NCBI GenBank assembly: GCA_010909165.1
Contig: MU008169.1
Span: forward strand, 2,046,001 to 2,110,000
Direction: 5' to 3'
Source of the DNA: Anthoceros angustus
Taxonomy: Eukaryota > Plantae > Anthocerotophyta
DNA length: 64,000 nucleotides
Part shown: positions 2,111-64,000 of the stretch, one piece after another
Layout: each line of letters opens with the position of its first letter
Numbering within the stretch: the first letter of the stretch is position 1
Made by a program: the position numbers and the translations under genes
Notes under the pieces: model-generated
What the model saw: the letters and a program-made list of their open reading frames with translations, nothing else
What the model was told of the DNA's origin: nothing
The model's database searches: none

Positions 2111-2254
2111 TCCGGAATAGCAACCGGAATTCCCCTGCTGTATCACTGGGGCACCCATACTCGCACGTGCCTGAAACCAGAATAAAATAAAAGGCACTTT
2201 CTCACATTCTGCTGAGCCCCAAGCTTACAGACATTAAGCTGCATTTGCAGCATT

Positions 2255-6259: not shown

Positions 6260-6408
6260 ATTGACCACGGATGCCGCACCTCACACACGCTGAGGTCTGG
6301 CAATCCTGCACCTCCTACTCACAATCCCGCTGGTCCTCCTAGCAAAAACTAACAAGCTTCGAAGCTCCTACACCTGTGACATAACCTAGCACCAGAACAT
6401 GTGCATAG

Positions 6409-22744: not shown

Positions 22745-22784
22745 AGCTGAGAAACATCTCAACCCTGAACCAATCCGTGCTCTC

Positions 22785-38467: not shown

Positions 38468-41400
38468 GCTCCTGCTCCCCCGCTACCCTAATCCACCAAC
38501 TTCACCACCCCTCCCGCCACGCCATTCCCACTCCCGCTTCCATTCCTTTCCCGCCAAGGCCATCCGCACCACATCAAGGCCGGCGCAGGGACTGAGCCCC
38601 TGCATCACGCCAAGCTCCTCCCCTGGCTCCTGCTGCTGCTGCTGCTCCCGTTCCCGCCACTCCTGCAGCCCATTTCACCGTGGATCGCAGCGCTGCACAC
38701 TGGGCCGGTGCCTGGCTGCCGCCTCAACATCCCGGACGCCTTTCCCGCTCATCGGCAGCCCGGGAGGCTGCGCAGGCAAGCCACGCCAATCCGGGACTGA
38801 ATTCACCGATTCCGCTCAGCCTGCGAGTGCCTTGAGGAAAAATCCTGGACCTGATTACCGGCTCGTGTTGCCGGGTGTTTGATGCCAGTAATGAAAAGGG
38901 CTCGCGGATGCTTCCACTCTGCGCTCAGCTGCCATCCACAGTCGCTGCCACATTACGGTAATCGACATCTATCTGGAACGCGAGCGCAAGTTTCCGCAGA
39001 GTGTGCTGCTGGCTTCGGTTCTTGCCACTCTTTGGTTAGGTTAGAGCTCTCGGTTTTATACATTTCTGGTTTGCTACATACATGTGCATGCATCTCGTTT
39101 CCTCAAGAATTCAGTCCTCAACCACATAGAAAGGTCTATGATATGAATGGCCATCATGTGGATTCAGCTCTTTTATCAATTTGCGACACCGGAGGGAGCG
39201 TGGGGAGCATTTTGCGAACGGAGCATGCGTAAATTTTCTGCAGCCATTTTGGTAAAAATTAAACATAAAAGCAATCTCAGCCTTGACCATGGAATGGATA
39301 TCTCCACAATTCACTACCTTGACATAAATACTAATAAAATAATGGATCAGTATAGGATGAGGTGTTTGTTTTTGGTAGTTTGAAAACTTTGTAAGAACTT
39401 CACTATTAAGCAACTTGGGGGATCAATACCGAGATGGGGTGTTGATTTTTAGTGGTTTGAAAAATTTGTAAATCATCCCGGTATCTAGGTTTAAAGTATG
39501 GAATATTGGTTTTGAAAATCATTTGTTGGTTGGCGTTATGTTCATACATTCGCTTTGTATACACATTTAAAACCTTTTCGGCCTTACTCTATGTGCCCCG
39601 ACCCTACCTACGACTTGCAGCTAGACCTTTTTTATTGGTGCGCCAAATGTCCGGCTAATCCGAGTTTGATGCGTGTATAGATGCATGCACCTTGGTTTCT
39701 AGATGAGCTACATTTTCCAAAATTTGACATGTGTAATGGTGGTTTCTGATGGCCAACCTTTTGAATACGACAATGTTTCACAATGTTTTACAGAGAAGTA
39801 AGAAAATAAAGATAATAGATGATCCGCCTTGAATGAATGCGTGTCGGATGTTGTCGAACACAAGCGAGAGCATATGCCCGCCACTACGAGCCCTAGTGAG
39901 AGCCGGTAGTATGTGAAGAAAGAGAGTTGGTCGCCTAGTGAGGATTTTGACCAAATGGTGACTCGATTTTAGTGAGGCTATGAAGGAGGACTGTCTATAC
40001 CCATGGCGCCCACCCACTGGTGTAGCTAGGTGTTCGAGACGAACCATAGCCGAGCTTCGCCAAGAGATTTTGAATTTAAGATCTAACTTGCACCATGTGC
40101 CGGCCGTGGGTGGACTAGTAAGGTTGAAAGCAGTGCGGACAAGGAGAAATGTAAGCCCAAGAGTTCGGTCAAGAAGCGTTGAGAAGGCATGACCATCCTT
40201 TAAGACCTTGCGATTCTGCCAAGGGCCTAGAGCAAAGAACTCTAAGTGTGGCTTGTCTCGGCATGGAGGGGCAGCCGACGTGTGCTGGCGTGATTTCTCG
40301 GGATCTTTGGGGTTTGAAAAGAACATTGATGTGAGTTTGCAGCGCGGCAAGTGTGCATGTGCAACTGAACGAAAGTGTTTGCTGCACAAGTATCGGCGCA
40401 ATCCTCTCCAAACCCGTGCACTGACTCTTTGAGTATAAGTCGCCAACGTCCGTGCACTCCCGCTCTTTGGAGCATGAGTGCGCCATCATCCGGCGTATCT
40501 TCTTTTGTATCCGGCAAGTGTATGGGTCTAGTTCTCTTAATCCACTTTAATTGGCAAAATTTGGCGTGTTTCTTCAAGCCAAAAAGGGTTTTGAGACAAA
40601 CCCTTCCGGAGAGACACAAAGCAAAGTGCTCATGTCACAAAGCAATACGGTAGAACGACTCCAAAGCATGCACCACCACGAATAACAAGTCCCATGTGAT
40701 AATCCGGCTGGTCTCGCCATATGCTTGTCCACGCAAGGCGATGCGGCATTGTTTTAGGGTTGCTCCCATACTGTCCCGTCGCCTTGTGAAACCCGTGAGG
40801 AGTCGGACTAGCACAAGGAGCATTTAAGTTCCGGACCCCAAGCTTCCACAAGGCTATTCACACCGGTACGTTGATCGATTACAAGTTCAAAGGTAGGGGA
40901 TGTCATGCTCAAACGCACAAGAGTTGACGCTCACGCATCCACCAACCTCAAGCTTGTCGAGAAAAGCATACAACAATGTAACGCTAGCTAGGGCGGAGTG
41001 GTGTAGCACCGCCACTTGACCACGTGGCCATCGGTGACGAAGGTCCCGAAAGGAGAGAAGACCCGCGCATCTGCGATAACATGTCCCTTGCACGCCTCAA
41101 GGACATTTAAAGAGGAAGGTTCCCTACTAGTATACAAACGAACATGAACGAACATGTAGCCCCCAAGGCCTTCACAGAGATATATTGCCACACATAAATA
41201 CAAGACAACGGATGAGGAATGTGAAAGAGATGAAGAAAATTGAATCGAAAATGCTTGAAAATTAAGAATAGAAAAATGCTTGAATAGAAAATTAAGAATA
41301 GGAAATGCTTTGATAGAGAAAATTAAGAACATCACATCTTTTACACTAGGTGGTCTTGCGTTTAAGTTTTTATGGGCAATTTTCTTAAAAGACAGTTATT

Positions 41401-42662
41401 TACATCGAGATGCTATCATAACATAAAGTTCTATGATATGAATGCCGCATCAACTTTTTTCGCCCACTCTCCAACAATCTTGCGATTCATCTAACTCTTA
41501 TTCCTCTAAGTCATACATCCGGTCAAGGGAACTATGTTGGCATGTTATAACTTTGGCACGTCATACATTTGCTCTTCACATGATACAAATTATAGACACA
41601 ACGGCTAGTAGTCGAGCAAGTGCACAAATTTGATTGTATTATGTGCATTGACCCGCCACATTTGCATCAACACATTCCTCATTGTCCTCTACGTAGTGTG
41701 TGCTTCTTGCAGCACCAAATTATGCTTAAGGAGTGAGGCGCTCAGACATAATAATATATGAGATGGTAGTTGACCAAGTCTCGGACATGTTGTGTCCATC
41801 ATAGCTTGGGATTTCGTGGGCTTCGCTCAACTTATAATCGATGCTAGTGGGCTTGGAAAGATTGGTGTTATTATCCCATCTCCTAACCCTAAAAGAAGAT
41901 TGAGAATCGTCATGAGCACATGAGCCATATGAGTGGATGAAAAGCTCAAGACACCTAGAATGAAGTTTGACAAAGCGAATCAAGTAGCACAACGGAGAAA
42001 CCACTCAAGGTTATTTAAGGTTGAGCTATTGGCCCGACGATGTAGTACTTACTCTAGAACAAATCCAAGACTTGCATAGAGAAATTACTATAGGCTCGCC
42101 ACCATCGAGATCAATTTTCTTAAAGCATGATTAATATATATGTTTTCCACCCAAAACAATAAGATTGTGGATTCTCTTTTAGGAATTTGGTTTTCGATTG
42201 CATAGCTGGAGTTCCAACCACACACCCGTCAGCCTTTGGCGGATCAAATGCTCCTTCAATACCCGGCCAGCCAATGATCCACCGGATGCTCGAGCGTCTA
42301 AGTGATGCGTGCACATCCGTTCAATTGTGTTGTTCAACGCATGTTTGTAGGTGTTCTTTTGCTAGTGAAGATGGGTTACTCATCGCTTGATCCGCATAAA
42401 AAACATTTTGGAAGACTTGGTTATTCATTGACTAGCACAAAAACCACAATGAAACGGAAAAACTATAAATAAATAGCTTGATATAAATACCAAGGATAAT
42501 AATTTTTATTTTTATTAAAACTTAAAAGCAGAATGTCAAAATATCTTTAAGAACAAGAAAAGAAACCGGATATCACCATCTTTTAGTGAACAATCATATT
42601 TGATGATGATCGAGAGTTATCATGAGCTTTGATACGTTATCGCGATAGATTGCCTTGGAGGC

Positions 42663-42670
42663 CTATATAT
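42663..42670 (+). promoter_or_regulatory. Candidate TATA box (CTATATAT) ~110 bp upstream of the 8CM gene ATG; present in all four units
   Basis: GGAGGCCTATATAT precedes CTACCATGGC at similar distance in each copy. Function is inferred. Confidence 0.4.
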
Positions 42671-42778
42671 GGGGTCAAGTTGCAATCTTGCAATCTTGAA
42701 CAAAATTGTGCTTGCCTTGTTGTGGGTTTTACATCTCCGTGTCTCACTACATCTTGGGTTGTTAGGCTTTCCGCTACC

Positions 42779-43094
42779 ATGGCTCTTGTGAAAATGTCCA
42801 TCATGTTGAAGACGATTTTGCTCATGATGATCTTTCTCTTGGCTTTGGAGGGCCACGGCAATGTTTGGAGGTGCTACTACCAAGGACTTGCACGTGGACT
42901 ATGAGTTCGCTCGATGCGAATGTGGTGGCTATGTGCTGGATCCGATCAAATATTTCCACCTTATCCAACCGCCGTTGTTGTTCATATTTGCGGTGGTTGG
43001 GACCCAGTGCATGTGCCAAGTTATGACAACACATCAGGACCGCAACGGATGTATGATTACATCCCGGTTGCAATTTTAAGCTCAACATTGTTGA
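42779..43094 (+). CDS. Secreted eight-cysteine-motif (nsLTP/prolamin-like) gene, copy 1; frameshifted as assembled
   Basis: Signal peptide MALVKMSIMLKTILLMMIFLLAL. The segments CAGSDQIFPPYPT, CMCQVMT and PQRMYDYIP lie in different frames. Confidence 0.65.
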
Positions 43095-46000
43095 AGACGA
43101 GTGGACGGAAAAAGTTGACACGAGCACTCTTGCCATGGAGCTTTTATGTTGAGGTGCACTTTTGGTCCTAATAGTTGGATCTGTTGGATAGATGTTCAAT
43201 GCGTAGTTCTAAGTGATTTGGTTGTATGTAGCGGATGTAGCTTGTTGGGTAGAGGAAGGAAAAAGAGTTGACGTGGGTATTCTTGCCATGGAACTTTGAT
43301 GTTGGGATCTACTTTTAAAGTAGTAGGGAGTTCTCATCCGATTATAAATGAAAATGTTTTCATTTAAAGGTTTTAAATGGTCGTGATCTCTTTGTTGATT
43401 CTAATCCCGTATGGAGCTGCCAGTGTCTCTCCGGAAAGGGGTTATTCGCCATTAAAGGGTTTGGGTTTCTAAAGGCCAAAATGACCTTCAAAACGGGCCA
43501 AAACGCATCATCTTCGTAAAACCACTCTTTAGAGATGTACAAAAGACATTGACCATGTTATTTTCTCGCGAACACTTACCGATGTGGTTTAAGCCAAGAA
43601 GGTTCGCAAATTTCATCTTCACAAGGAAGGATTTCAAGGATTTATATCGGTCTGGGAATTCTAAACACCTCTTTCGCAGTTTACAAGATTCTAGCAGTTG
43701 AATAAAGCAAACCAAACCAAACCAGTCCAACAAGCCAAAGTGCCTTAACGTCCAACAGAACCAACATGCAAAAGAAGCAACTCCCAAGCCCAAAACAAAA
43801 ACCGCTACCGACGTCCGGCGAATTGTGAGAGGACATCAAGCGGCTGATCGTGGCCATCTCGAGAGGGACAAACTAGGACTCTAGAAAACAGACCACACGC
43901 CTAGTGCAATGTAAGTACACACAGGATCTCCATTATTAGAGTGAAAACAGAGGAAGGAAATGGGGCAATGCGCGAGGTTGGCGCATTACGCGATCAAGCC
44001 GCGCGACGCGCGATTTCGGAGTCCCCAATCTTGCCGGGCATCAACGCGATGGAAGTGGTGTATTCGAGACCCCAATCTTGCCGGGTGTCCAGCGATGGAA
44101 GTGTTGGAGTGGATGCGGACGTCCGCGATTTGTATATGTATTATTTCTATCCGATAGAAGAATATGTGCTTTGGGGGTGTAGATAGACCGATTAACATAA
44201 GAACTCCAAAGTCCCGGGTTGGATCAAGATAGGATGGGGTGTTTGTTTTGGTAGTTTGAAAACTTTGTAAGAACTCCACCTGTCAAGCAACTTGGGGATC
44301 GGGATCAATCACGAGATGGGGTGTTGATTTTAGTGGTTTTGAAAAATTTGTAAATCATCCAGATCTAGGTTTAAAGTATGGAATATTGGTTTTGAAAATC
44401 ATTTGTTGGTTGACGTTATGTTCATACATTCGCTTTGTATACACATTTAAAACCTTTTCGGCCTTACTCTATGTGCCCCGACCCTACCTACGACTTGCGC
44501 TAGACCTTTTTATTGGTGCGCCAAATGTCCGGCTAATCCGAGTTTGATGCGTGTATAGATGCATGCGCCTTGGTTTCTAGATGAGCTACATTTTCCAAAA
44601 TTTGACATGTGTAATGGTGGTTTCGATGGCCAACCTTTTGAATACGACAATGTTTCACAATGTTTCTGAGAAGTAAGAAAATAAAGATAATAGATGATCC
44701 GCCTTGAATGAATGCGTGCCGGATGTTGTCGAACACAAGCGAAGAGAGCATATGCCCGCCACCACGAGCCCTAGTGAGCCAGTATGTGAAGAAAGAGAGT
44801 TGGTCGCCTAGCGAGGATTTTGACCAAATGGTCGACTCGATTTTAGTGAGGCTATGAAGGAGGACCCGTCTATACCCATGGACGCATGCACTGTGGTGTA
44901 GCTAGGTGTTCGAGACGAACCATAGCCGAGCCGCCAAGAGATTTTGAATTTAAGATCTAACTTGCACCATGTGCCGGCCGTGGGTGGACTAGTAAGGTTG
45001 AAAGCGACGGACAAGGAGAAATGTAAGCCCAAGAGTTCGGTCAAGAAGCGTTGAGGAGGCATGACCATCCTTTAAGACCTTGCCCGATTCTTGCCCGCGG
45101 GGCCTAGAGCAGCAACTCTAAGTGTGGCTTGTCTCTGGCATGGAGGGGCAGGTGTGTGGTGCGCGGGGATTTCGTGATGGGGTTTTGAAAAGAACATTGA
45201 TGTGAGTGTCGGTGCGCGGTGGCAAGTGTGCACAGGCAACTGGAACGAAAGTGTTTGCCTGCACAAGTATCGGCGCAATCCTCTCCAAACCCGTGCACTC
45301 TGACTCTTTGAGTATAAGTCGCCAACGTCCGTGCACTCCCGCTCTTTGAGCATGAGTCGCCATCCGGCGTATCTTCTTTTGTATCCGTTGGCAAGTGTAT
45401 GGGTCTAGTTCTCTTAATCCACTTTAATTGGCAAAATTTGACGTGTTTCTTCAAGCCAAAAGGGTTTTGAGACAAACCCCTTTCCGGAGAGACACAAAGC
45501 AAAGTGCTCATGTCACAAAGCAATACGGTAGAACGTGCTCCAAAGCATGCACCACGAATAACAAGTCCCATGTGATAATCCGCTGGTCCGCCATATGCTT
45601 GTCCACGCAAGGCGATGCGGCATTGTTTTAGGGTTGCTCCCATACCGTGTCCCAGACGCCTGGGCAAACCTGAGGAGTCGGACTAGCACAAGGAGCATTT
45701 AAGTTCCGGGACCCCAAGCTTCCACAAGGCTATTCACCGGTACGTTGATCGATTACAAGTTCAAAGGTAGGGGATGTCATGCTCAAACGCACAAGAGTTG
45801 ACGTTCACGCATCCACCAACCTCAAGCTTGTCGAAAAGCATACAACAATGTAACGCTAGCTAGGGCGGAGTGGTGTAGCACCGCCACTTGACCACGTGGC
45901 CATCGGTGACGAAGGTCCCGAAAGGAGAGAAGACTGCCACGATCTGGCGATAACATGTCCCTTGCCCGCCTCAAGGACATTTAAAGAGGGAAGGTTCCTA

Positions 46001-47675
46001 CTAGTATACAAACGAACATGAACGAACATGTAGCCCCAAGGCCTTCACAGAGATATATTGCCACACACATAAATACAAGACAACGGATGAGGAATGTGAC
46101 GAAGAGATGAAGAAAATTGAATCGAAAATGCTTGAAAATTAAGAATAGAAAAATGCTTGAATAGAGAAAATTAAGAATAGGAAATGCTTTGATAGAGAAA
46201 ATTAAGAACATCACATCTTTTACACTAGGTGGTCTTGCGTTTAAGTTTTTATGGGCAATTTTCTTAAAAGACAGTTATTTACATCGAGATGCTATCATAA
46301 CATAAAGTTCTATGATATGAATGCCGCATCAACTTTTTTTCCACTCTCCAACAATCTTGCGATTCATCTAACTCTTATTCCTCTAAGTCATACATCCGGT
46401 CAAGGGAACTATGTTGGCATGTTATAACTTTGGCACGCCATACATTTGCTCTTCACATGATACAAATTATAGACACAACGGCTAGTAGTCGAGCAAGTGC
46501 ACAAATTTGATTGTATTATGTGCATTGACCCGCCACATTTGCATCAACACATTCCTCATTGTCCTCTACGTAGTGTGTGCTTCTTGCAGCACCAAATTAT
46601 GCTTCAGGAGTGAGGCGCTCAGCACATAATAATATATGAGATGGTAGTTGACCAAGTCTCAGACATGTTGTGTGCGCATCTGTCATAGCTTGGGATTCCG
46701 TGGGCTTCGGCTCTGAACTTATAATCGATGCTAGTGGGCTTGGAAAGATTGGTGTTATTATCCCATCTCCTAACCCTAAAAGAAGATTGAGAATCGTCAT
46801 GAGCACATGAGCCATATGAGTGGATGAAAAGCTCAAGACACCTAGAATGAAGTTTGACAAAGCGAATCAAGTAGCACAACGGAGAAACCACCAAGGTTAT
46901 TTAAGGTTGAGCTATTGGCCCGACGTATGTAGTACTTACTCTAGAACAAATCCAAGACTTGCATAGAGAAATTACTATAGGCTCGCCACCATCGAGATCA
47001 ATTTTCTTAAAGCATGATTAATATATATGTTTTCCACCCAAAACAATAAGATTGTGGATTCTCTTTTAGGAATTTGGTTTTCGATTGCATAGCTGAGTTC
47101 CAACCTATACCACACCGTCGGCGACCTTTGGCGGATCAAATGCTCCTTCAATACCCGCCAGCCAATCGATCCACGGATGCTCGGCGTCTGAAAGTGATGC
47201 GTGCACATCCGTTCAATTCGGTGTTGTTCAACGCATGTTTGTAGGTGTTCTTTTGCTAGTGAAGATGGGTTACTCATCGGTTGACTGCACAAAAAAACAT
47301 TTTGGAAGACTTGGTTATTCATTGACTAGCACAAAACCACAATGAAACGGAAAAACTATAAATAAATAGCTTGATATAAATACCAAGGATAATAATTTTT
47401 ATTTTTATTAAAACTTAAAAGCAGAATGTCAAAATGTCTTTAAGAACAAGAAAAGAAACCGGATATCACCATCTTTTAGTGAACAATCATATTTGATGAT
47501 GATCGAGAGTTATCATGAGCTTTTGATACGTTATCGCGATAGATTGCCTTGGAGGCCTATATATGTGGGGTCGATGTTGCAATCTTGCAATCTTGAACAA
47601 AATTGTGCTTGCCTTGTTGTGGGTTTTACATCTCCGTGTCTCACTACATCTTGGGTTGTTAGGCTTTCCGCTACC

Positions 47676-47982
47676 ATGGCTCTTGTGAAAATGTCCATCA
47701 TGTTGAAGACGATTTTGCTCATGATGATCTTTCTCTTGGGCTTTGGAGGCCACGGCAATGTTTGGAGGTGCTACTACCAAGGACTTGCACGTGGACTATG
47801 AGTTCTATGCGAATGTGGTGGCTATGTGCGCTGGATCCGATCAAATATTTCCACCTTATCCAACCGGTTGTTGTTCATATTCTTGGTTGGGACCCGGCAT
47901 GTGCCAAGTTATGACTCACAATTGTGACCGCAACGGATGTATGATTACATCCTGGTTGCAATTTTAAGCTCAACATTGTTGA
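47676..47982 (+). CDS. Eight-cysteine-motif gene, copy 2; frameshifted as assembled
   Basis: ORF 47743..47967 shows ANVVAMCAGSDQIFPPYPTGCCSYSWLGPGMCQVMTHNCDRNGC. Confidence 0.65.
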
Positions 47983-48689
47983 AGACGAGTGGACGGAAAA
48001 AGTTGACACGAGCACTCTTGCCATGGAGCTTTTATGTTGAGGTGCACTTTTGGTCCTAATAGTTGGATCTGTTGGATAGATGTTCAATGCCAGTTCTAAG
48101 TGATTTGGTTGTATGTAGCGGATGTAGCTTGTTGGGTAGAGGAAGGAAAAAGAGTTGACGTGGGTATTCTTGCCATGGAACTTTGATGTTGGGATCTACT
48201 TTTAAAGTAGTAGGGAGTTCTCATCCGATTATAAATGAAAATGTTTTTCATTTAAAGGTTTTAAATGGTCGTGATCTCTTTGTTGATTCTAATCCCGTAT
48301 GGAGCTGCCAACAGTGTCTCTCCGGAAAGGGGTTATTCGCCATTAAAGGGGTTTGGGTTGCTAAAGGCCAAAAAATGACCTTCGAAAACGGGCCAAAACG
48401 CATCATCTTCAGAAAACCACTCTTTAGAGATGTACAAAAAAAACATTGACCATGTTATTTTCTCGCGAACACTTACGCTGACAGGGTTTAAGCCGAAGAA
48501 GGTTCGCAAATTTCATCTTCACAAGGAAGGGATTTCAAGGATTTATATCAGGTCTGGGAATTCTAAACACCTCTTTCGCAAGCGACGATTTCCTAGCGTT
48601 GAGAGGCAAACCAAACCAAACCAGTCCAACAAGCCAAAAAGCGAGCGTCCAACAACCAACATGCAAAAGAAGCAACTCCCAAGCCCAAA

Positions 48690-49700
48690 ACAAGCAACGC
48701 GACGTCCGGCAATTGTGAGAGGACATCAAGCGGCGGCTGATCGGCCATCTCGAGAGGGACAAACTAGGACTCTAGAAAACAAGACACGCCTAGTGCAATG
48801 TAAGTACACACAGGATCTCCATTATTAGAGTGAAAACAGAGGAAGGAAATGGGGCAATGCGCTGAGGTTGGCGCATTGGCGCGAGTGTCAAGCTCGCCGC
48901 GGACGTCCGGCGATTTCGAGTCCCCAATCTTGCCGGGCATCGAACGCGATGGAAGTGGTGTATTCGAGACCCCAATCTTGCGGGTGTCCAACATGATGGA
49001 AGTGTTGAGTGGATGCGCGGACGTCCGGCGTGTTGTATATGTATTATTTCTATCCGATAGAAGAATATGTGCTTTGGCGGGGTGTAGATAGACCGATTAA
49101 CATAAGAACTCCAAAGTCCAGCGCCCGGGTTGGATCGATAGGATGGGGTGTTTGTTTTGGTAGTTTGAAAACTTTGTAAGAACTCCATCACAAGCAACGC
49201 GACGTCCGGCGCAATTGTGAGAGGACATCAAGCGGCGGCTGATCGAGCCATCTCGAGAGGGACAAACTAGGACTCTAGAAAACAGCACCACGTCTAGTGC
49301 AATGTAAGTACACAGGATCTCCATTATTAGAGTGAAAACAGAGGAAGGAAATGGGGCAATGCGCTGAGGTTGGCGCATTGGCGCGAGTGTCAAGCTCGCC
49401 GCGGACGTCCGGCGATTTCGAGTCCCCAATCTTGCCGGGCATCGAACGCGATGGAAGTGGTGTATTCGAGACCCCAATCTTGCGGGTGTCCAACATGATG
49501 GAAGTGTTGAGTGGATGCGCGGACGTCCGGCGTGTTGTATATGTATTATTTCTATCCGATAGAAGAATATGTGCTTTGGCGGGGTGTAGATAGACCGATT
49601 AACATAAGAACTCCAAAGTCCAGCGCCCGGGTTGGATCGATAGGATGGGGTGTTTGTTTTGGTAGTTTGAAAACTTTGTAAGAACTCCAAGCCCAAAACA
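48690..49700. repeat. Local duplication of a ~500-bp sub-unit of the 4.9-kb repeat
   Basis: 48690-49190 and 49195-49695 are near-identical, and the landmark spacing is 502 bp. Confidence 0.9.
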
Positions 49701-52700
49701 AGCAACTTGGGGGATCAATACCGAGATGGGGTGTTGATTTTAGTGGTTTGAAAAATTTGTAAATCATCCGGTATCTAGGTTTAAAGTATGGAATATTGGT
49801 TTTGAAAATCATTTGTTGGTTGACGTTATGTTCATACATTCGCTTTGTATACACATTTAAAACCTTTTCGGCCTTACTCTATGTGCCCCGACCCTACCTA
49901 CGACTTGCGCTAGACCTTTTTATTGGTGCGCCAAATGTCCGCTAATCCGAGTTTGATGCGTGTATAGATGCATGCGCCTTGGTTTCTAGATGAGCTACAT
50001 TTTCCAAAATTTGACATGTGTAATGGTGGTTTCGATGGCCAACCTTTTGAATACGACAATGTTTCACAATGTTTTGAGAAGTAAGAAAATAAAGATAATT
50101 GATGATCGCCTTGAATGAAAGCGTGTCGGATGTTGTCGAACACAAGCGAAGAAGGTTCGCAAATTTCATCTTCACAAGGAAGGATTTCAAGGATTTATAT
50201 CGGTCTGGGAATTCTAAACACCTCTTTCGCAGACTTCCTAGCGTTGAGAGGCAAACCAAACCAAACCAGTCCAACAAGCCAAAGTCCAGCGCAACCAACA
50301 TGCAAAAGAAGCAACTCCAAGCCCAAAACAAGCAACGCGACGTCCGGCGCAATTGTGAGGACATCAGCGGCTGATCGGCCATCTCGAGAGGGACAAACTA
50401 GGACTCTAGAAAACAAGACACCACCGTCTAGTGCAATGTAAGTACACCACAGGATCTCCATTATTAGAGTGAAAACAGAGGAAGGAAATGGGGCAATGCG
50501 CTGAGGTTGGCGCATTGGCGCGAGTGTCTTGGCGCGGACGTTCGGCGATTTCGAGTCCCCAATCTTGCCGGGCATCGAACGCGATGGAAGTGGTGTATTC
50601 GAGACCCCAATCTTGCGGGTGTCCAGCGATGGAAGTGTTGAGTGGATGCGCGGACGTCCGGCGTGTTGTATATGTATTATTTCTATCGATAGAAGAATAT
50701 GTGCTTTGGCGGTGTAGATAGACCGATTAACATAAGAACTCCAAAGTCCAGCGCCGGGTTGGATCGATATAGGATGGGGTGTTTGTTTTGGTAGTTTGAA
50801 AACTTTGTAAGAACTCCATCACAAGCAACTTGGGATCGGGATCAATACCGAGATGGGGTGTTGATTTTAGTGGTTTGAAAAATTTGTAAATCATCCGGTA
50901 TCTAGGTTTAAAGTATGGAATATTGGTTTTGAAAATCATTTGTTGGTTGACGTTATGTTCATACATTCGCTTTGTATACACATTTAAAACCTTTTCGGCC
51001 TTACTCTATGTGCCCCGACCCTACCTCGACTTGCAGCTAGACCTTTTTATTGGTGCGCCAAATGTCCGGCTAATCCGAGTTTGATGCGTGTATAGATGCA
51101 TGCGCCTTGGTTTCTAGATGAGCTACATTTTCCAAAATTTGACATGTGTAATGGTGGTTTCGATGGCCAACCTTTTGAATACGACAATGTTTCACAATGT
51201 TTTCGAGAAGTAAGAAAATAAAGATAATTGATGATCGCCTTGAATGAAAGCGTGTCGGATGTTGTCGAACACAAGGTAAGAGAGCATATGCCCGCCACCA
51301 CGAGCCCTAGTGAGAGCCAGTATGTGAAGAAAGAGAGTTGGTCGCCCTAGGAGGATTTTGACCAAATGGTCGACTCAAGATTTTAGTGAGGCTATGAAGG
51401 AGGACTGTCTATACCCATTGTGACGCCCATGCACTGCAGTGCCTAGGTGTTCGGAGGCGAACCATAGCCGAGCTCGCCAAGAGATTTTGAATTTAAGATC
51501 TAACTTGCACCATGTGCCGTGGGTGGACTAGTAAGGTTGAAAGCGTGCGGACAAGGAGAAATGTAAGCCCAAGAGTTCGGTCAAGAAGCGTTGAGGAGGC
51601 ATGACCATCCTTTAAGACCTTGCCCGATTCTCGCCATGGGCCTAGAGCAAAGAACTCCAAGTGTGGCTTGTCTCGGCATGGAGGGGCGGGCGAGGTGTGC
51701 CCGGCGTGGATTTCTCGGGATGATGGGGTTTTGAAAAGAACATTGATGTGAGTGTTTCGGTGGCAAGTGTGCAAGTGTGCAATCGAACGAAAGTGTTTGC
51801 TGCAAGTATCGGCGCAATCCTCTCCAAACCCGTGCACTCTGACTCTTTGAGTATAAGTGCGCCAACGTCCTGCACTCCCGCTCTTTGAGCATGAGTGCGC
51901 CATCATCCGTATCTTCTTTTGTATCCGCTGGCAAGTGTATGGGTCTAGTTCTCTTAATCCACTTTAATTGGCAAAATTTGACGTGTTTCTTCAAGCCAAA
52001 AGGGTTTTGAGACAAACCCCTTCCGGAGAGACACAAAGCAAAGTGCTCATGTCACAAAGCAATACGGTAGAACGACTCCAAAGCATGCACCAATAATAAC
52101 AAGTCCCATGTGATAATCCGCTGGTCCGCCATATGCTTGTCCACGCAAGGCGATGCGGCATTGTTTTAGGGTTGCTCCATACCGTGTCCCGTCGCCTTGG
52201 GCCGTGAAACCGTGAGGAGTCGGACTAGCACAAGGAGCATTTAAGTTCCAGGACCCCAAGCTTCCACAAGGCTATTCACATGCACGTTGATCGATTACAA
52301 GTTCAAAGGTAGGGATGTCATGCTCAAACGCACAAGAGTTGACGCTCACGCATCCACCAACCTCAAGCTTGTCGAGAAAAGCATACAACAATGTAACGCT
52401 AGCTAGGGCGGAGTGGTGTAGCACCGCCACTTGACCACGTGGCCATCGGTGACGAAGGTCCCGAAAGGAGAGAAGACTGCCACAGATCTGATAACATGTC
52501 CCTTGCCGCCTCAAGGACATTTAAAGAGGGAAGGTTCCTACTAGTATACAAACGAACATGAACGAACATGTAGCCCCAAGGCCTTCACAGAGATATATTG
52601 CCACACACATAAATACAAGACAACGGATGAGGAATGTGACGAAGAGATGAAGAAAATTGAATCGAAAATGCTTGATAGAGAAAATTAAGAATAGAAAAAT

Positions 52701-54225
52701 GCTTGAATAGAGAAAATTAAGAATAGGAAATGCTTTGATAGAGAAAATTAAGAACATCACATCTTTTACACTAGGTGGTCTTGCGTTTAAGTTTTATGGG
52801 CAATTTTCTTAAAAGACGGTTATTTACACCGAGATGCTATCATAACATAAAGTTCTATGATATGAATGCCGCATCAACTTTTTTCCCACTCTCCAACAAT
52901 CTTGCGATTCATCTAACTCTTATTCCTCTAAGTCATACATCCGGTCAAGGGAACTATGTTGGCATGTTATAACTTTGCACGTCATACATTTGCTCTTCAC
53001 ATGATACAAATTATAGACACAATGGCTAGTAGTCGAACGAAGTGCACACATTTGATTGTATTATGTGCATTGACCCGCCACATTTGCATCAACACATTCC
53101 TCATTGTCCTCTACGTAGTGTGCTTCTTGCAAAGACCAAATTATGCTTCAGGAGTGAGGCGCTCAGCACATAATAATATATGAGATGGTAGTTGACCAAG
53201 TCTCAGACATGTTGTGTGCGCATCTGTCCTAGCTTGGGATTCTGTGGGCTTCGGCTCTGAACTTATAATCGATGCTAGTGGGCTTGGAAAGATTGGTGTT
53301 ATTATCCCATCTCCTAACCCTAAAAGAAGATTGAGAATCGTCATGAGGACATGAGCCATATGAGTGGATGAAAAGCTCAAGACACCTAGAATGAAGTTTG
53401 ACAAAGCGAATCAAGTAGCACAACGGAGAAACCACTGAAGGTTATTTAAGGTTGAGCTATTGGCCCGGCGTATGTAGTACTTACTCTAGAACAAATCCAA
53501 GACTTGCATAGAGAAATTACTATAGGCTCGCCACCATCGAGATCAATTTTCTTAAAAGCATGATTAATATATATGTTTTCCACCCAAAACAATAAGATTG
53601 TGGATTCTCTTTAGAATTTGGTTTTCGATTGCATAGCTGGAGTTCCAACCCTATACCACACCGTCGACCTTTGGCGGATCAAATGCTTCTTCAATACCCG
53701 GCCAGGCCAATCGATCCACCGGATGCTCGGCGTCTAAGTGATGCGTGCACATCCGTTCAATTCGTGTTGTTCAACGCATGTTTGTAGGTGTTCTTTTGCT
53801 AGGTGAAGATGGGTTACTCATCAGTTGATCTGCACAAAAAAAACATTTTGGAAGACTTGGTTATTCATTGACTAGCACAAAAAACCACAATGAAACGGAA
53901 AAAACTATAAATAAATAGCTTGATATAAATACCAAGGATAATAATTTTTTATTTTTTTATTAAAACTTAAAAGCAGAATGTCAAAATATCTTTAAGAACA
54001 AGAAAAGAAACTGGATATCACCATCTTTTAGTGAACAATCATATTTGATGATGATCGAGAGTTATCATGAGCTTTTTGATACGTTATCGCGATAGATTGC
54101 CTTGGAGGCCTATATATGGGGTCGGTGTTGCAATCTTGCAATCTTGAACAAAATTGTGCTTGCCTTGTTGTGGGTTTTACATCTCGTGTCTCACTACATC
54201 TTGGGTTGTTAGGCTTTCCGCTACC

Positions 54226-54542
54226 ATGGCTCTTGTGAAAATGTCCATCATGTTGAAGACGATTTTGCTCATGATGGTCTTTCTCTTGGCTTTGGAGGCC
54301 ACGGCAATGTTTGGAGGTGCTACTACCAAGGACTTGCACGTGGACTATGAGTTCGCTCGATGCGAATGTGGTGGCTATGTCTGGATCCGATCAAATATTT
54401 CCACCTTATCCAACCGCCGGTTGTTGTTCATATTCGGTGGTTGGGACCCGGTGCATGTGCCAAGTTATGACTCACAATTGTGACCGCAACGGATGTATGA
54501 TTACATCCTGGTTGCAATTTTGACGAAGCTCAACATTGTTGA
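54226..54542 (+). CDS. Eight-cysteine-motif gene, copy 3; frameshifted as assembled
   Basis: The signal peptide is in ORF 54154..54483. ORF 54311..54523 shows EVLLPRTCTWTMSSLDANVVAM..PTAGCCSY..CMCQVMTHNC. HPGCNFDEAQHC* is readable at the 3' end. Confidence 0.65.
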
Positions 54543-55189
54543 AGACAGTGGACGGAAAAAGTTGACACGAGCACTCTTGCCATGGAGCTTTTATGTTGAG
54601 GTGCACTTTTGGTCCTAATAGTTGGATCTGTTGGATAGATGTTCAATGCGTAGTTCTAAGTGATTTGGTTGTATGTAGCGGATGTAGCTTGTTGGGTAGA
54701 GGAAGGAAAAAGAGTTGACGTGGGTATTCTTGCCATGGAACTTTGATGTTGGGATCTACTTTTAAAGTAGTAGGAGTTCTCATCCCGATTATAAATGAAA
54801 ATGTTTTTCATTTAAAGGTTTTAAATGGTCGTGATCTCTTTGTTGATTCTAATCCCGTATGGAGCTGCCAGCAGTGTCTCTCCGGAAAGGGTTATTCGCC
54901 ATTAAAGGGGTTTGGGTTCCTAAAGGCCAAAACGACCTTCAAAACGGGCCAAAACGCATCATCTTGAAAACCACTCTTTAGAGATGTACAAAAGACATTG
55001 ACCATGTTATTTTCTCGCGAACACTTACAGGGTTTAAGCCAAGAAGGTTCGCAAATTTCATCTTCACAAGGAAGGATTTCAAGGATTTATATCGGTCTTT
55101 GGGAATTCTAAACACCTCTTTTACAAGATTTCCTAGCAGTTGAACAAGAGGCAAACCAAACCAAACCAGTCCAACAAGCCAAAGTACGC

Positions 55190-56760
55190 AACGTCCAGAA
55201 CCAACATGCAAAAGAAGCAACCCCAAGCCCAAAATATAAACCACGGACGTCCGCGAATTGTGAGAGGACATCAAGCGATGATCGTGGCCATCTCGAGAGG
55301 GACAAACTAGGACTCTAGAAAACAGCACCACACGCCTAGTGCAATGTAAGTACACAGGATCTCCATTATTAGAGTGAAAACAGAGGAAGGAAATGGGGCA
55401 ATGCGCTGAGGTTCGCGCATTGGCGCGAGTGTCAAGCCCGCGGACGCTCGCATTTCTGGAGTCCCCAATCTTGCCGGGCATCCAACGCGATGGAAGTGGT
55501 GTATTCGAGACCCCAATCTTGCCGGGTGTCCAGCGATGGAAGTGTTGAGTGGATGCGCGGACGTCCGGCGATTTGTATATGTATTATTTCTATCGATAGA
55601 AGAATATGTGCTTTGGCGGTAGATAGACCGATTAACATAAGAACTCCAAAGTCCAGCGCCCCACAGGGTTGGATCAAGATAGGATGGGGTGTTTGTTTTG
55701 GTAGTTTGAAAACTTTGAGAACTCCACCGAAGCAACTCCCAAGCCCAAAACAAGCAACCGGACGTCCGGCGCAATTGTGAGAGGACATCAAGCGAGACTG
55801 GTGGCCATCTCGAGAGGGACAAACTAGGACTCTAGAAAACAGCACCACGTCTAGTGCAATGTAAGTACACAGGATCTCCATTATTAGAGTGAAAAGAGGA
55901 AGGAAATGGGGCAATGCGCTGAGGTTCGGCGCATTGGCGCGAGTGTCAAGCTCACATGGACGTTCGCATTTCTGGAGTCCCCAATCTTGCCGGGCATCCA
56001 ACGCGATGGAAGTGGTGTATTCGAGACCCCAATCTTGCGGGTGTCCAGCGATGGAAGTGTTGAGTGGATGCGCGGACGTCCGGCGTGAGTATATGTATTA
56101 TTTCTATCCGATAGAAGAATATGTGCTTTGGCGTAGATAGACCGATTAACATAAGAACTCCAAAGTCCAGCGCCCCACAGGGTTGGATCAAGATAGGATG
56201 GGGTGTTTGTTTTGGTAGTTTGAAAACTTTGAGAACTCCACCGAAGCAACTCCCAAGCCCAAAACAAGCAACCGGACGTCCGGCGCAATTGTGAGAGGAC
56301 ATCAAGCGACACTGATCGTGGCCATCTCGAGAGGGACAAACTAGGACTCTAGAAAACAGCACCACGTCTAGTGCAATGTAAGTACACAGGATCTCCATTA
56401 TTAGAGTGAAAAGAGGAAGGAAATGGGGCAATGCGCTGAGGTTCGGCGCATTGGCGCGAGTGTCAAGCTCACATGGACGTTCGCATTTCTGGAGTCCCCA
56501 ATCTTGCCGGGCATCCAACGCGATGGAAGTGGTGTATTCGAGACCCCAATCTTGCGGGTGTCCAGCGATGGAAGTGTTGAGTGGATGCGCGGACGTCCGG
56601 CGTGAGTATATGTATTATTTCTATCCGATAGAAGAATATGTGCTTTGGCGTAGATAGACCGATTAACATAAGAACTCCAAAGTCCAGCGCCCCACAGGGT
56701 TGGATCAAGATAGGATGGGGTGTTTGTTTTGGTAGTTTGAAAACTTTGAGAACTCCAGCA
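55190..56760. repeat. Local triplication of the ~515-bp sub-unit
   Basis: Landmarks at 55682, 56196 and 56713 (spacing 514 and 517 bp). Confidence 0.92.
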
Positions 56761-59700
56761 TCAAGCAACTTGGGGGATCAATACGAGATGGGGTGTTGAT
56801 TTTAGTGGTTTGAAAAATTTGTAAATCATCCCGGTATCTAGGTTTAAAGTATGGAATATTGGTTTGAAAATCATTTGTTGGTTGACGTTATGTTCATACA
56901 TTCGCTTTGTATACACATTTAAAACCTTTTCGGCCTTACTCTATGTGCCCCGACCCTACCTACGACTTGCGCTAGACCTTTTTATTGGTGCGCCAAATGT
57001 CCGCTAATCCGAGTTTGATGCGTGTATAGATGCATGCGCCTTGGTTTCTAGATGAGCTACATTTTCCAAAATTTGACATGTGTAATGGTGGTTTCGATGG
57101 CCAACCTTTTGAATACGACAATGTTTCACAATGTTTTCTGAAGTAAGAAAATAAAGATAATAGATGATCTGCCCTTCAGTAATGAAAGCGTGTCGGATGT
57201 TGTCGAACACAAGCAGAAGAGAGCATATGCCCGGCCACGACGAGCCCTAGTGAGAGCCAGCGAGTATGTGAAGAAAGAGAGTTGGTCGCCTTAGCTGAGG
57301 ATTTTGACCAAATGGCTGACTCAGTATTTTAGTGAGGCTATGAAGGAGGACCTGTCTATACCCACTGTGACGCCCACTGCAGCTGTGGTGCGCTAGGTGT
57401 TCAGAGACGAACCATAGCCGAGCTTCGCCAAGAGATTTTGAATTTAAGATCTAACTTGCACCATGTGCCGGCCGTGGGTGGACTAGTAAGGTTGAAAGCG
57501 ACGACAAGGAGAAATGTAAGCCCAAGAGTTCGGTCAAGAAGCGTTGAGGAGGCATGACCATCCTTTAAGACCTTGCCCGATTCTCGCCAAGGGCCTAGAG
57601 CAAAGAACTCCAAGTGTGGCTTGTCTCGCATGGAGGGGCAGTCGGCTGTGGTGTGCTCGCGTGGATTTCGTGATGGGGTTTTGAAAAGAACATTGATGTG
57701 AGTGTCGGTGCGCGTGGCAAGTGTGTGCACGAACGAAAGTGTTTGCTGCACAAGTATCGGCAATCCTCTCCAAACCCGGTGCACTCTTTGAGTATAAGTG
57801 CGCCAACGTCCTGCACTCCCGCTCTTTGAGCATGAGTGCGCCATCATCCGGCGATCTTCTTTTGTATCCGTTGGCAAGTGTATGGGTCTAGTTCTCTTAA
57901 TCCACTTTAATTGGCAAAATTTGACGTGTTTCTTCAAGCCAAAAGGGGTTTTGAGACAAACCCCTTCCGGAGAGACACAAAGCAAAGTGCTCATGTCACA
58001 AAGCAATACGGTAGAACGTACTCCAAAGCATGCACCGATCCACGAATAACAAGTCCCATGTGATAATCCGCTGGTCTCGCCATATGCTTGTCCACGCAAG
58101 GCGATGCGCATTGTTTTAGGGTTGCTCCATACCGTGTCCGCACGCCTGGTGAAACCCGTGAGGAGTCGGACTAGCACAAGGAGCATTTAAGTTCCGGACC
58201 CCAAGCTTCCACAAGGCTATTCACACGATACGTTGATCGATTACAAGTTCAAAGGTAGGGATGTCATGCTCAAACGCACAAGAGTTGACGCTCACGCATC
58301 CACCAACCTCAAGCTTGTCGTGAAAAGCATACAATGTAACGCTAGCTAGGCGGAGTGGTGTAGCACCGCCACTTGACCACGTGGCCATCGGTGTGAAGGT
58401 CCCGAAGGAGAGAAGACCGCCAAGATCTGATAACATGTCCCTTGCCGCCTCAAGGACATTTAAAGAGGGAAGGTTCCCTACTAGTATACAAACGAACATG
58501 AACGAACATGTAGCCCCCAAGGCCTTCACAGAGATATATTGCCACACACATAAATACAAGACAACGGATGAGGAATGTGACGAGAGATGAAGAAAATTGA
58601 ATCGAAAATGCTTGATAGAGAAAATTAAGAATAGAAAAATGCTTGAATAGAGAAAATTAAGAATAGGAAATGCTTTGATAGAGAAAATTAAGAACATCAC
58701 ATCTTTTACACTAGGTGGTCTTGCGTTTAAGTTTTTATGGGCAATTTTCTTAAAAGAAGGTTATTTACACTGAGATGCTATCATAACATAAAGTTCTATG
58801 ATATGAATGCCGCATCAACTTTTTTTCGCCCACTCTCCAACAATCTTGCGATTCATCTAACTCTTATTCCTTCTAAGTCATACATCTGGTCAAGGGAACT
58901 ATGTTGGCATGTTATAACTTTGGCACGTCATACATTTGCTCTTCACATGATACAAATTATAGACACAACGGCTAGTAGTCGAAGTGCACACATTTGATTG
59001 TATTATGTGCATTGACCCGCCACATTTGCATCAACACATTCCTCATTGTCCTCTACGTAGTGTGTGCTTCTTGCAGACCAAATTATGCTTCAGGAGTGAG
59101 GCGCCAAGACATAATAATATATGAGATGGTAGTTGACCAAGTCTCGGACATGTTGTGATCCGTCCTAGCTTGGGATTACGTGGGCTTCGCTCAACTTATA
59201 ATCGATGCTAGTGGGCTTGGAAAGATTGGTGTTATTATCCCATCTCCTAACCCTAAAAGAAGATTGAGAATCGTCATGAGCACATGAGCCATATGAGTGG
59301 ATGAAAAGCTCAAGACACCTAGAATGAAGTTTGACAAAGCGAATCAAGTAGCACAACGGAGAAACCATCAAGGTTATTTAAGGTTGAGCTATTGGCTGAC
59401 GTATGTAGTACTTACTCTAGAACAAATCCAAGACTTGCATAGAGAAATTACTATAGGCTCGCCACCATCGAGATCAATTTTCTTAAAGCATGATTAATAT
59501 ATATGTTTTCCACCCAAAACAATAAGATTGTGGATTCTCTTTTAGGAATTTGGTTTTCGATTGCATAGCTGGAGTTCCAACCCTATACCACACCCGTCGA
59601 CAGCCTTTGGCGGATCAAATGCTTCTTCAATACCCGGCCAGGCCAACTGATCCACCGGATGCTCGAGCATCTACGGAAAGTGATGCGTGCACATCTGGTT

Positions 59701-60168
59701 CAATTCGGTGTTGTTCAACGCATGTTTGTAGGTGTTCTTTTTGCTAGCTGTGAAGATGGGTTACTCATCAGTTGATCTGCACAAAAAAAACATTTTGGAA
59801 GACTTGGTTATTCATTGACTAGCACAAAAACCACAATGAAACGGAAAAACTATAAATAAATAGCTTGATATAAATACCAAGGACAATAATTTTTATTTTT
59901 ATTAAAACTTAAAAGCAGAATGTCAAAATGTCTTTAAGAACAAGAAAAGAAACCGATATCACCATCTTTTAGTGAACAATCATATTTGATGATGATCGAG
60001 AGTTATCATGAGCTTTTGATACGTTATCGCGATAGATTGCCTTGGAGGCCTATATATGTGGGGTCGGTGTTGCAATCTTGCAATCTTGAACAAAATTGTG
60101 CTTGCCTTGTTGTGGGTTTTACATCTCCGTGTCTCACTACATCTTGGGTTGTTAGGCTTTCCGCTACC

Positions 60169-60482
60169 ATGGCTCTTGTGAAAATGTCCATCATGTTGAA
60201 GACGATTTTGCTCATGATGGTCTTTCTCTTGGCTTTGAGGGGCCAGCAATGTTTGGAGGTGCTACTACCAAGGACTTGCACGTGGACTATGAGTTCCTCG
60301 ATGCGAATGTGGTGGCTATGTGCGCTGGATCCGATCAAATATTTCCACCTTATCCAACCGCCGGTTGTTGTTCATATTTGCGGCTGGTTGGGACCCATGT
60401 GCCAAGTTATGACAACAATTCAGACCGCAACGGATGTATGATTACATCCTGGTTGCAATTTGACGAAGCTCAACATTGTTGA
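60169..60482 (+). CDS. Eight-cysteine-motif gene, copy 4; frameshifted as assembled
   Basis: ORF 59986..60441 gives MALVKMSIMLKTILLMMVFLLALRGQQCLEVLLPRTCTWTMSS in one frame. ORF 60249..60482 gives DANVVAMCAGSDQIFPPYPTAGCCSYLR...FDEAQHC*. Confidence 0.65.
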
Positions 60483-63400
60483 AGACGAGTGGACGGAAAA
60501 AGTTGACACGAGCACTCTTGCCATGGAGCTTTTATGTTGAGGTGCACTTTTGGTCCTAATAGTTGGATCTGTTGGATAGATGTTCAATGCGCAGTTCTAA
60601 GTGATTTGGTTGTATGTAGCGGATGTAGCTTGTTGGGTAGAGGAAGGAAAAAGAGTTGACGTGGGTATTCTTGCCATGGAACTTTGATGTTGGGATCTAC
60701 TTTTAAAGTAGTAGGGAGTTCTCATCCGATTATAAATGAAAATGTTTTTCATTTAAAGGTTTTAAATGGTCGTGATCTCTTTGTTGATTCTAATCCCGTA
60801 TGGAGCTGCCAGTGTCTCTCGGAAGGGGTTATTCGCCATTAAAGGGTTTGGGTTCTAAAGGCCAAAAATGACCTTCAAACGGGCCAAACGCATCATCTTG
60901 AAAACCACTCTTTAGAGATGTACAAAAAGACATTGACCATGTTATTTTCGCGAACACTTACACCGAGTGGTTTAAGCCAAGAAGGTTCGCAAATTTCATC
61001 TTCACAAGGAAGGGATTTCAAGGATTTATATCGGTCTTTGAATTCTAAACACCTCTTTCATAGCGAGATTCCTAGGTGTTGAACAAGAGGCAAACCAAAC
61101 CAAACCAAACCAGTCCAACAAGCCAAAGTACGCGAACGTCCAGTAACCAACATGCAAAAGAAGCAACTCCCAAGCCCAAAACAAGCAACCGGACGTCCGC
61201 AATTGTGAGAGGACATCAAGCGGCGACTGATCGGCCATCTCGAGAGGGACAAACTAGGACTCTAGAAAACAGCACCACGCCTAGTGCAATGTAAGTACAC
61301 AGGATCTCCATTATTAGAGTGAAAACAGAGGAAGGAAATGGGGCAATGCGCTGAGGTTCGGCGCATTGGTGTCTTGGCTTTGCCGCGGACGTTAGCGCAT
61401 TTCGAGTCCCCAATCTTGCCGGGCATCCAACGCGATGGAAGTGGTGTATTCGAGACCCCAATCTTCTTTGGGTGTCCAGCGATGGAAGTGTTGAGTGGAT
61501 GCGCGGACGTCCGGCGATATATATGTATTATTTCTATCCGATAGAAGAATATGTGCTTTGGCGTAGATAGACCGATTAACATAAGAACTCCAAAGTCCAG
61601 CGCCCCGGGTTGGATCGATAGGATGGGGTGTTTGTTTTGGTAGTTTGAAAACTTTGTGAGAACTCCACCGCCAAGCAACTTGGGGGATCAATACCGAGAT
61701 GGGGTGTTGATTTTAGTGGTTTGAAAAATTTGTAAATCATCCGGTATCTAGGTTTAAAGTATGGAATATTGGTTTGAAAATCATTTGTTGGTTGACGTTA
61801 TGTTCATACATTCGCTTTGTATACACATTTAAAACCTTTTCGGCCTTACTCTATGTGCCCGACCCTACCTACGACTTGCAGCTAGACCTTTTTATTGGTG
61901 CGCCAAATGTCCGGCTAATCCGAGTTTGATGCGTGTATAGATGCATGCGCCTTGGTTTCTAGATGAGCTACATTTTCCAAAATTTGACATGTGTAATGGT
62001 GGTTTCGATGGCCAACCTTTTGAATACGACAATGTTTCACAATGTTTCTGAGAAGTAAGAAAATAAAGATAATTGATGATCCGCCTTCAAGAATGAATGC
62101 GTGTCGGATGTTGTCGAACACAAGCGAAGAGAGCATATGCCCGCCACTCGAGCCCTTGTGAGAGCCAGTATGTGAAGAAAGAGAGTTGGTCGCCCTAATG
62201 AGGATTTTGACCAAATGGTCGACTCGATTTTAGTGAGGCTATGAAGAAGGACACATCTATACCCTGGCCCCACTGCGGTGTGGTGTAGCTAGGTGTTCGA
62301 GACGAACCATAGCCGAGCTTCGCCAAGAGATTTTGAATTTAAGATCTAACTTGCACCATGTGCCGCCATGGGTGGACTAGTAAGGTTGAAAGCAGTGCGG
62401 ACAAGGAGAAATGTAAGCCAAGAGTTCGGTCAAGAAGCGTTGAGGAGGCATGACCATCCTTTAAGACCTTGCCCGATTCTCGCCTGGGCCTAGAGCGCAA
62501 CTCTAAGTGTGGCTTGTCTCGCATGGAGGCGGGTCGACAGGTGTGCCCGCATCGTGGATTTCTCGGGATGTTGGGGTTTGAAAAGAACATTGATGTGAGT
62601 GTCGGTGGCAAGTGTGCACAGCAACTGAACGAAAGTGTTTGCACTGCACAAGTATCGGCGCAATCCTCTCCAAACCCGGTGCACTCTGACTCTTTGAGTA
62701 TAAGTGCGCCAACGTCCTGCACTCCCGCTCTTTGGAGCATGAGTCGCAGTCATCCGTGTCTTCTTTGCGCAGTTTAAAGTATGGAATATTGGTTTGAAAA
62801 TCATTTGTTGGTTGACGTTATGTTCATACATTAACACATTTAAAACCTTTTCGGCCTTACTCTATGTGCCCGACCCTACCTACGACTTGCAGCTAGACCT
62901 TTTTATTGGTGCGCCAAATGTCCGGCTAATCCGAGTTTGATGCGTGTATAGATGCATGCGCCTTGGTTTCTAGAGCTACATTTTCCAAAATTTGACATGT
63001 GTAATGGTGGTTTCGATGGCCAACCTTTTGAATACGACAATGTTTCACAATGTTTCTGAAGTAAGAAAATAAAGATAATTGATGATCTGGCCTTCAGTAA
63101 TGAATGCGTGTCGGATGTTGTCGAACACAAGCAGAAGAGAGCATATGCCCGGCCACTACGAGCCCTTGTGAGAGCCAGCGAGTATGTGAAGAAAGAGAGT
63201 TGGTCGCCCTAGCTGAGGATTTTGACCAAATGGCTGACTCAGTATTTTAGTGAGGCTATGAAGAAGGACCTGTCTATACCCACTGTGACGCCCACTGCAG
63301 CTGTGGTGTAGCTAGGTGTTCAGAGACGAACCATAGCCGAGCTTCGCCAAGAGATTTTGAATTTAAGATCTAACTTGCACCATGTGCCAGCCGTGGGTGG

Positions 63401-64000
63401 ACTAGTAAGGTTGAAAGCGGTACGGACAAGGAGAAATGTAAGCCCCGAAGAGTTCGGTCAAGAAGCGTTGAGGAGGCATGACCATCCTTTAAGACCTTGC
63501 CCGATTCTCGCCCGCGGGGCCTAGAGCAGCAACTCTAAGTGTGGCTTGTCTCTGGCATGGAGGGGGCAGGTCAGACAGGGTGTGCCTGGCATCAGGGATT
63601 TCTCAGGATGTTGGGGTTTGAAAAGAACATTGATGTGAGTGTCGGTGCGCGGTGGCAAGTGTGCACAGGCAACTGGAACGAAAGTGTTTGCTCGCACAAG
63701 TATCGGCGCAATCCTCTCCAAACCCGGCACTCTGACTCTTTGAGTATAAGTCGCCAACGTCCTGCACTCCGCTCTTTGAGCATGAGTGCGCCATCGTCCG
63801 GCGTATCTTCTTTTGTATCCGCTGGCAAGTGTATGGGTCTAGTTCTCTTAATCCACTTTAATTGGCAAAATTTGACGTGTTTCTTCAAGCCAAAAAGGGG
63901 TTTTGAGACAAACCCCTTTCCGGAGAGACACAAAGCAAAGTGCTCATGTCACAAAGCAATACGGTAGAACGTACTCCAAAGCATGCACCAGTCACGAATA

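Follow-up and report, generated by a model that had tools for sequence, protein, structure and literature searches.

The window analysed here, a 64,000-nt stretch of Anthoceros angustus DNA (assembly GCA_010909165.1, contig MU008169.1, positions 2,046,001 to 2,110,000), ends in a macrosatellite, in which at least four and a half units of about 4.9 kb follow one another head to tail in the genome of this seed-free land plant. The original prediction, made from the letters alone, was that the array hides a gene for a small secreted protein with the eight-cysteine motif (8CM) of the nsLTPs (non-specific lipid transfer proteins) and prolamins, broken in every copy and present at high dosage. The array is a real macrosatellite and an ordinary kind of object. 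Judged from its sequence, the repeat unit holds no recognisable protein-coding gene, and it probably contains no working gene. The short open reading frame (ORF) behind the prediction would be a chance ORF in TG-rich sequence, or else a decayed or orphan small peptide gene; a candidate gene of any kind is possible but unproven, and the assembly leaves its true frame undecidable. The differences between copies, in turn, look mostly like nanopore-type consensus errors of long reads at methylated cytosines.

Organization of the array

Self-comparison of the window, together with tiling of unit 1 over it, showed that the forward strand from 39343 to 64000 is a head-to-tail tandem array reaching the window end. 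The components of the array are as follows:

39343..64000 (+), the macrosatellite as a whole; the window end cuts it off (self-BLAST, unit 1 tiling)
39343..44219 (+), unit 1, 4877 nt (tiling)
44220..49119 (+), unit 2; 91 mismatches and 212 gap columns relative to unit 1 (93.9% identity)
49131..50749 (+), extra sequence between units 2 and 3: a further junction sub-repeat of ~0.5 kb, the unit's first 525 nt, and its last ~620 nt again
50760..55654 (+), unit 3 (tiling)
55670..56685 (+), two further copies of the sub-repeat found at the junctions (~0.51 kb; unit positions 4432-4872 and 1-61; tiling)
56701..61598 (+), unit 4 (tiling)
61611..62756 (+), partial unit, unit positions 1-1150 (tiling)
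62772..64000 (+), partial unit that starts again at unit position 147 and is cut off by the window end (tiling)

There are thus four full units, each with a core of 4.88–4.90 kb, and two partial units at the right side of the array; the window ends inside the array, so that the copy number is a lower bound. The full units are 93–94% identical to one another as assembled, and unit 1 has no match in the window outside the array. The tandem array of close 4.9-kb copies that had been predicted is therefore real, but its period is not constant: the start-to-start distances are 4877, 6540, 5941 and 4910 nt. The spacing is unequal because the junction sub-repeat (unit positions 4432-4872 plus 1-61), which is found one to three times, and the first 0.5–1.1 kb of the unit are duplicated again between some of the units. 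The two sub-repeat copies at 55670..56685 are 99% identical by BLAST and 98.6% identical in the multiple alignment. Unequal crossing-over or replication slippage may have re-duplicated both the ~0.5-kb sub-repeat and the unit's first ~1 kb. An origin from elements with long terminal repeats (LTRs) or terminal inverted repeats was considered and rejected, as the borders of the unit carry neither terminal inverted repeats nor LTR-like ends.

In its kilobase-sized head-to-tail units and the high similarity of their copies, the array resembles macrosatellites and higher-order repeats such as ampliconic or ribosomal DNA-type arrays, with which it also shares a nested shorter sub-repeat whose copy number varies from unit to unit. 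It differs from them in that its unit lacks a ribosomal, transfer or small nuclear RNA gene and any recognisable protein gene, and from ampliconic gene arrays in that no copy has an intact ORF and no frame matches a protein family.

Differences between copies

The units differ from one another by about 6–7%, and the kind of difference is unusual. Between units there are 91 mismatches and 150 gap openings, which corresponds to about 1.6 openings per mismatch, whereas a duplication in the same window, lying inside an intact ORF of 1286 amino acids (aa), has 57 mismatches and only 8 gap openings (ratio 0.14). The transition/transversion ratio among units is about 1.1, and all pairs of units are equally distant, in a star-like manner. 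The differences gather in 187 variable clusters per unit alignment, and in 54% of these the four copies show three or four different variants.

The variable positions are strongly associated with CG. Fifty-six percent of the CG dinucleotides lie at most 1 nt from a variable column, compared with 12–16% for AT, TA, AA and TT; 64% of the clusters contain CG, against 21% ± 3% of matched invariant windows; and 30% of the columns near CG are variable, about four times the proportion far from CG (7.7%). The same relation is visible in the eight aligned copies of the junction sub-repeat, where CG-free stretches are identical and CG-dense stretches are scrambled. Consensus errors in nanopore assemblies concentrate at methylation motifs (PMC6591954). 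This signature suggests that most of the differences between copies are not mutations but residual long-read errors at methylated CG (and CHG) sites, which would have persisted where short reads could not polish a multi-copy region. If the errors at CG sites do reflect methylation, the array would probably be methylated, silent repeat DNA.

A tandem duplication of ~760 nt elsewhere in the window, at 10726-12242, is similarly rich in indels, with 27 gap openings and 28 mismatches at 90.6% identity.

Content of the repeat unit

A Pfam search with all 99 six-frame ORFs of at least 55 aa from units 1 and 2 gave no match at E ≤ 0.01, and ten long ORFs of the unit likewise matched no Pfam family. 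Rfam scans, both at the gathering cut-off and at E ≤ 1, found no RNA family in the unit, and a tRNA scan found no tRNA gene. Metagenome contigs were scanned by exact DNA match for a copy of the array that had been assembled independently and accurately, and no match was returned.

On the minus strand, at 39700-40900 (unit positions ~250-1550), all three frames are open, giving overlapping ORFs of 222, 125 and 106 aa. By picking variants among the copies these can be extended to as many as 434 codons, and they have no Pfam match; their openness is probably an effect of composition and not a sign of coding.

The candidate reading frame

The predicted gene corresponds to one short region per full unit on the plus strand:

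42664..42670 (+), TATATAT of copy 1, 115 nt upstream of the ATG
42779..43079 (+), candidate ORF region of copy 1; the signal-peptide frame ends after 41 codons, and the Cys-rich pieces are in the two other frames
47676..47967 (+), candidate ORF region of copy 2; the signal-peptide frame ends after 41 codons
54226..54523 (+), candidate ORF region of copy 3; longest continuous Cys-rich piece, out of frame with the signal peptide
60169..60482 (+), candidate ORF region of copy 4; alone among the copies, it has the signal peptide and QCLEV...MSS in one frame and reads ...DEAQHC before the stop

The start of the region was described correctly. Each full unit has the opening CTACCATGGC once, which makes exactly four occurrences against 0.12 expected. 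The TATA-like box placed about 110 bp upstream is a TATATAT that lies 115–118 nt before the ATG in all four copies (at 47558, 54111 and 60051 in copies 2, 3 and 4). The hydrophobic, signal-peptide-like N-terminus, MALVKMSIMLKTILLMM(I/V)FLLAL, is also the same in the four copies except for one I/V change.

Downstream of this start the reading falls apart. As predicted, no copy is intact and the breaks fall at different places in the four copies. The pieces of the proposed composite do exist, but in different frames of different copies, and the signal peptide runs into QCLEV... in copy 4 only. The Cys-rich frame starts about 10 nt or less from where the hydrophobic stretch ends, and the signal peptide is joined to the mature part in one copy only, by the shortest variant. 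In copy 2 the piece from ANVVAMC to WLQF is in one frame, with GMC in place of CMC, and in copy 3 the Cys-rich piece (54305-54520) comprises 72 aa with eight Cys. The segment LRWLGPxCMC of the composite is found in no copy and merges two frames. Concerning the two alternative ends that had been proposed, the ...DEAQHC tail is restricted to copy 4, and the other three copies stop directly after WLQF. Shortly downstream of copy 1's candidate ORF, a stretch of 55 nt at 43109-43163 (+) recurs 153 nt later at 43262-43316 (+) with 78% identity, CTTGCCATGGA being present in both.

A consensus of the copies does not restore the gene. The four-copy majority has the signal peptide in one frame, the CC in a second and the CxC in a third, and at least two frame changes are needed for a continuous reading. 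Such an outcome had been named beforehand as refuting the prediction; this majority was taken from the assembly, whereas the consensus originally meant was one polished with reads. Every frame break of the candidate lies at a CG-containing hot spot of the error type, which supports the earlier suspicion that the breaks may be assembly artefacts; the frames are therefore undecidable from this window.

The argument that each segment is readable in at least one copy was compared with chance, by leaving each invariant ATG of the unit free to take the variant of any copy at every variable site. Composite ORFs of at least 100 codons arose from 30 of the 114 invariant ATGs on the plus strand and from 34 of the 94 on the minus strand (26–36%), the candidate itself reaching 132 codons under the same free choice. 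Since variant picking so commonly yields at least 100 codons, readability in some copy carries no weight: the pieces are there, but the length of their composite is no more than chance provides. The Cys content of the candidate (9.8%) is the third highest among 173 ORFs of the array. A second Cys-rich ORF in the unit, at 42163-42387 and 59526-59744 (+), with 7–8 Cys in 73–75 aa and including CC and CRC, is equally rich in Cys; used as a control, it shows that Cys-rich frames arise readily in the TG-rich unit.

Comparison with eight-cysteine-motif proteins

Assignment to the 8CM superfamily was examined with five single-copy pieces of the candidate, the joined multi-copy composite being left out of both searches and folding, which sets the limit of these family tests. 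None of the five matched a Pfam family of the 8CM clan (LTP_2, Tryp_alpha_amyl, Hydrophob_seed and Prolamin_like were considered), even at E ≤ 10. A word search of 5.8 billion proteins with the 72-aa piece of copy 3 gave no candidate relative, and an exhaustive phmmer (HMMER) search of 1.84 billion representatives gave none either. The single marginal phmmer match, P0001, was rejected as spurious, as it is itself a translated tandem repeat (satellite) and was matched in 14 stretches. Among PDB sequences, two pieces found no nsLTP, 2S albumin or inhibitor chain at E ≤ 10, the sole match being a dystrobrevin chain (E = 1.1), and the ESM Atlas gave no usable match. The protein-language-model recognition value was 1220, under the level of 2300 that is reached by 91% of known-family proteins and by 9% of shuffled or reversed ones. 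Single-sequence AlphaFold2 prediction returned three strands and no helix, with a mean predicted local distance difference test score of 43.5 and a predicted template modelling score of 0.30, values too unreliable for the model to count either way.

What likeness there is lies in the signal-peptide-like start, in size and in the formal order of the cysteines. The CC-X8/9-CXC spacing is known in some nsLTP types, and the piece of copy 3 can be written as C-X8-C-X28-CC-X8-CXC-X6-C-X4-C (gaps of 8, 28, 0, 8, 1, 6 and 4). This pattern appears only in copy 3, where a 3-nt gap deletes a ninth Cys, and is not read in a single frame in the remaining copies; the composite originally proposed contains 9–10 Cys. 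According to Boutrot et al. 2008 (PMC2277411), nsLTPs have a mass of 6.5–10.5 kDa and an isoelectric point (pI) of about 8.5–12. The copy-3 piece falls within this range in mass (7.96 kDa) and outside it in pI, which is 5.43 for this piece and 4.4–4.5 for the others. In the text of that paper, which describes nine angiosperm nsLTP types, the shortest spacing given between Cys6 and Cys7 is the 12 residues of type III, against 6 in the copy-3 piece; the two gaps that follow the CxC are thus 6 and 4 here, compared with at least 12 and then about 6–13 in the types given there. The candidate further differs from nsLTPs in lacking profile or sequence similarity and, in the low-confidence model, any predicted helix; moreover, three of the four copies have a break in frame between signal peptide and Cys-rich part. 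The nsLTP/prolamin identity that had been proposed is left unsupported by profiles, sequence relatives, PDB chains, pI and Cys spacing alike, and the idea of a secreted protein at high dosage found no support.

Flanking genes and the rest of the window

The left flank of the array holds ordinary plant genes. One of them is represented by an exon with a tify domain at 37886-38467 (-) (E = 5.7e-10), and the array starts only ~880 nt upstream of the ATG of this exon, so that it adjoins the promoter side of the tify gene. A large exon of a PRAF-type gene, with RCC1 repeats and a FYVE domain, is at 29948-32167 (-). Its best named relatives are from liverworts (Marchantia, Riccia and Calypogeia; 67–69% identity), and a single contig from a read archive comes closer, at 79%. 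Named proteins seem to cover this lineage poorly. An ORF of 361 aa at 21866-22951 (-) contains RNI-type leucine-rich repeats (LRR_6, E = 1.5e-9).

The ORF of 1286 aa whose internal duplication was compared with the array is uninterrupted, spans 2408-6268 (-) and has no Pfam match. The internal duplication is of 1.3 kb (2253-3552 versus 4317-5610, 92.5% identity), and between its two arms, at 3550-4276, there is an array of about 27 copies of a 27-nt repeat encoding nine residues of the type PEVVAAESA. The product looks like a coiled-coil or acidic-repeat protein.

Discussion

Several observations weigh against the view that the array unit is without a working gene. The combination of ACCATGG, the upstream TATATAT and a hydrophobic N-terminus makes the start of the candidate resemble that of a real plant secretory gene, and ACCATGG occurs only once in the unit, precisely at this start. 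The hydrophobic start ranks best of the 58 ATG-initiated ORFs in the unit, and its score as a signal-peptide-like sequence is reached by 4 of 374 background ATG-initiated ORFs (~1%); the order C..C..CC..CxC..C..C of the eight Cys in the copy-3 piece is seen in 0.6% of shuffles, both rarities having been noticed after the fact. Small Cys-rich secreted peptides of plants are often without detectable relatives, and the frame breaks of the candidate could all be artefacts. As to methylation and error, CpG is present at 0.87 of expectation, so that long-term methylation decay is not visible, and about 7% of the columns far from CG also vary, which leaves room for some real divergence.

A rival reading is a real, lineage-specific gene for a small secreted Cys-rich peptide, not necessarily an nsLTP, which the true genome would carry intact and which would have been amplified together with its promoter, the breaks being errors of assembly. 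We consider this unlikely. In its favour are the start, its ACCATGG context and the TATATAT kept through four copies, the Cys-richness of what follows and the position of all frame breaks at error-type CG hot spots; against it, the majority consensus cannot be read through without frame changes, the signal peptide meets the mature part in one short variant only, chance composites of such length are common, and the candidate has no relatives, a low recognition value and a fold of low confidence. Moreover, if the errors linked to CG reflect methylation, the array is likelier to be silenced than highly expressed.

A true pseudogene array, in which amplification of a small gene that once worked was followed by independent decay of the copies through real indels, would account for the lack of an intact copy and for the variable columns away from CG. 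Neighbouring sub-repeats also share variants as if these were inherited (68 informative versus 90 singleton columns in the eight-copy alignment). The excess of gap openings over mismatches and the transition/transversion ratio near 1.1 are nonetheless unlike natural decay, as the duplication inside the 1286-aa ORF illustrates, and identical hot spots with three or four variants among four copies, star-like equal distances and undepleted CpG point the same way; such an array is distinctly improbable. We give still less credence to the fullest form of the gene hypothesis, namely that the true sequence of each unit has an intact gene for a secreted peptide of ~100 aa, peculiar to this lineage and built on an 8CM-like scaffold of ten cysteines, amplified with its promoter into an array of many copies and forming an orphan branch of the prolamin/nsLTP proteins that methylation-linked assembly errors hide from annotation. 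The original prediction of a divergent nsLTP/prolamin 8CM protein at high dosage is the least credible, its fit lying in size, CC-CXC spacing and a formal cysteine order that only the copy with the 3-nt gap shows, and being set against the negative family searches, the Cys6-Cys7 gap, the acidic pI and a low-confidence fold of strands without helices.

A macrosatellite without a working gene, whose copies differ mostly through errors of assembly, thus remains the reading that we prefer. Its main import is one of caution on assembly quality, since probable indel errors are dense at CG sites in this multi-copy array; ORFs inside such arrays can therefore be neither accepted nor rejected from an assembly alone, and stitching ORFs together across the copies of an array gives gene-like readings by chance. 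Should the candidate prove to lie in a single frame and to be transcribed, it would exemplify, for an early-diverging land plant, the growth of a macrosatellite from a promoter-plus-gene cassette for a small secreted peptide, a finding of moderate interest to the study of orphan cysteine-rich peptides.

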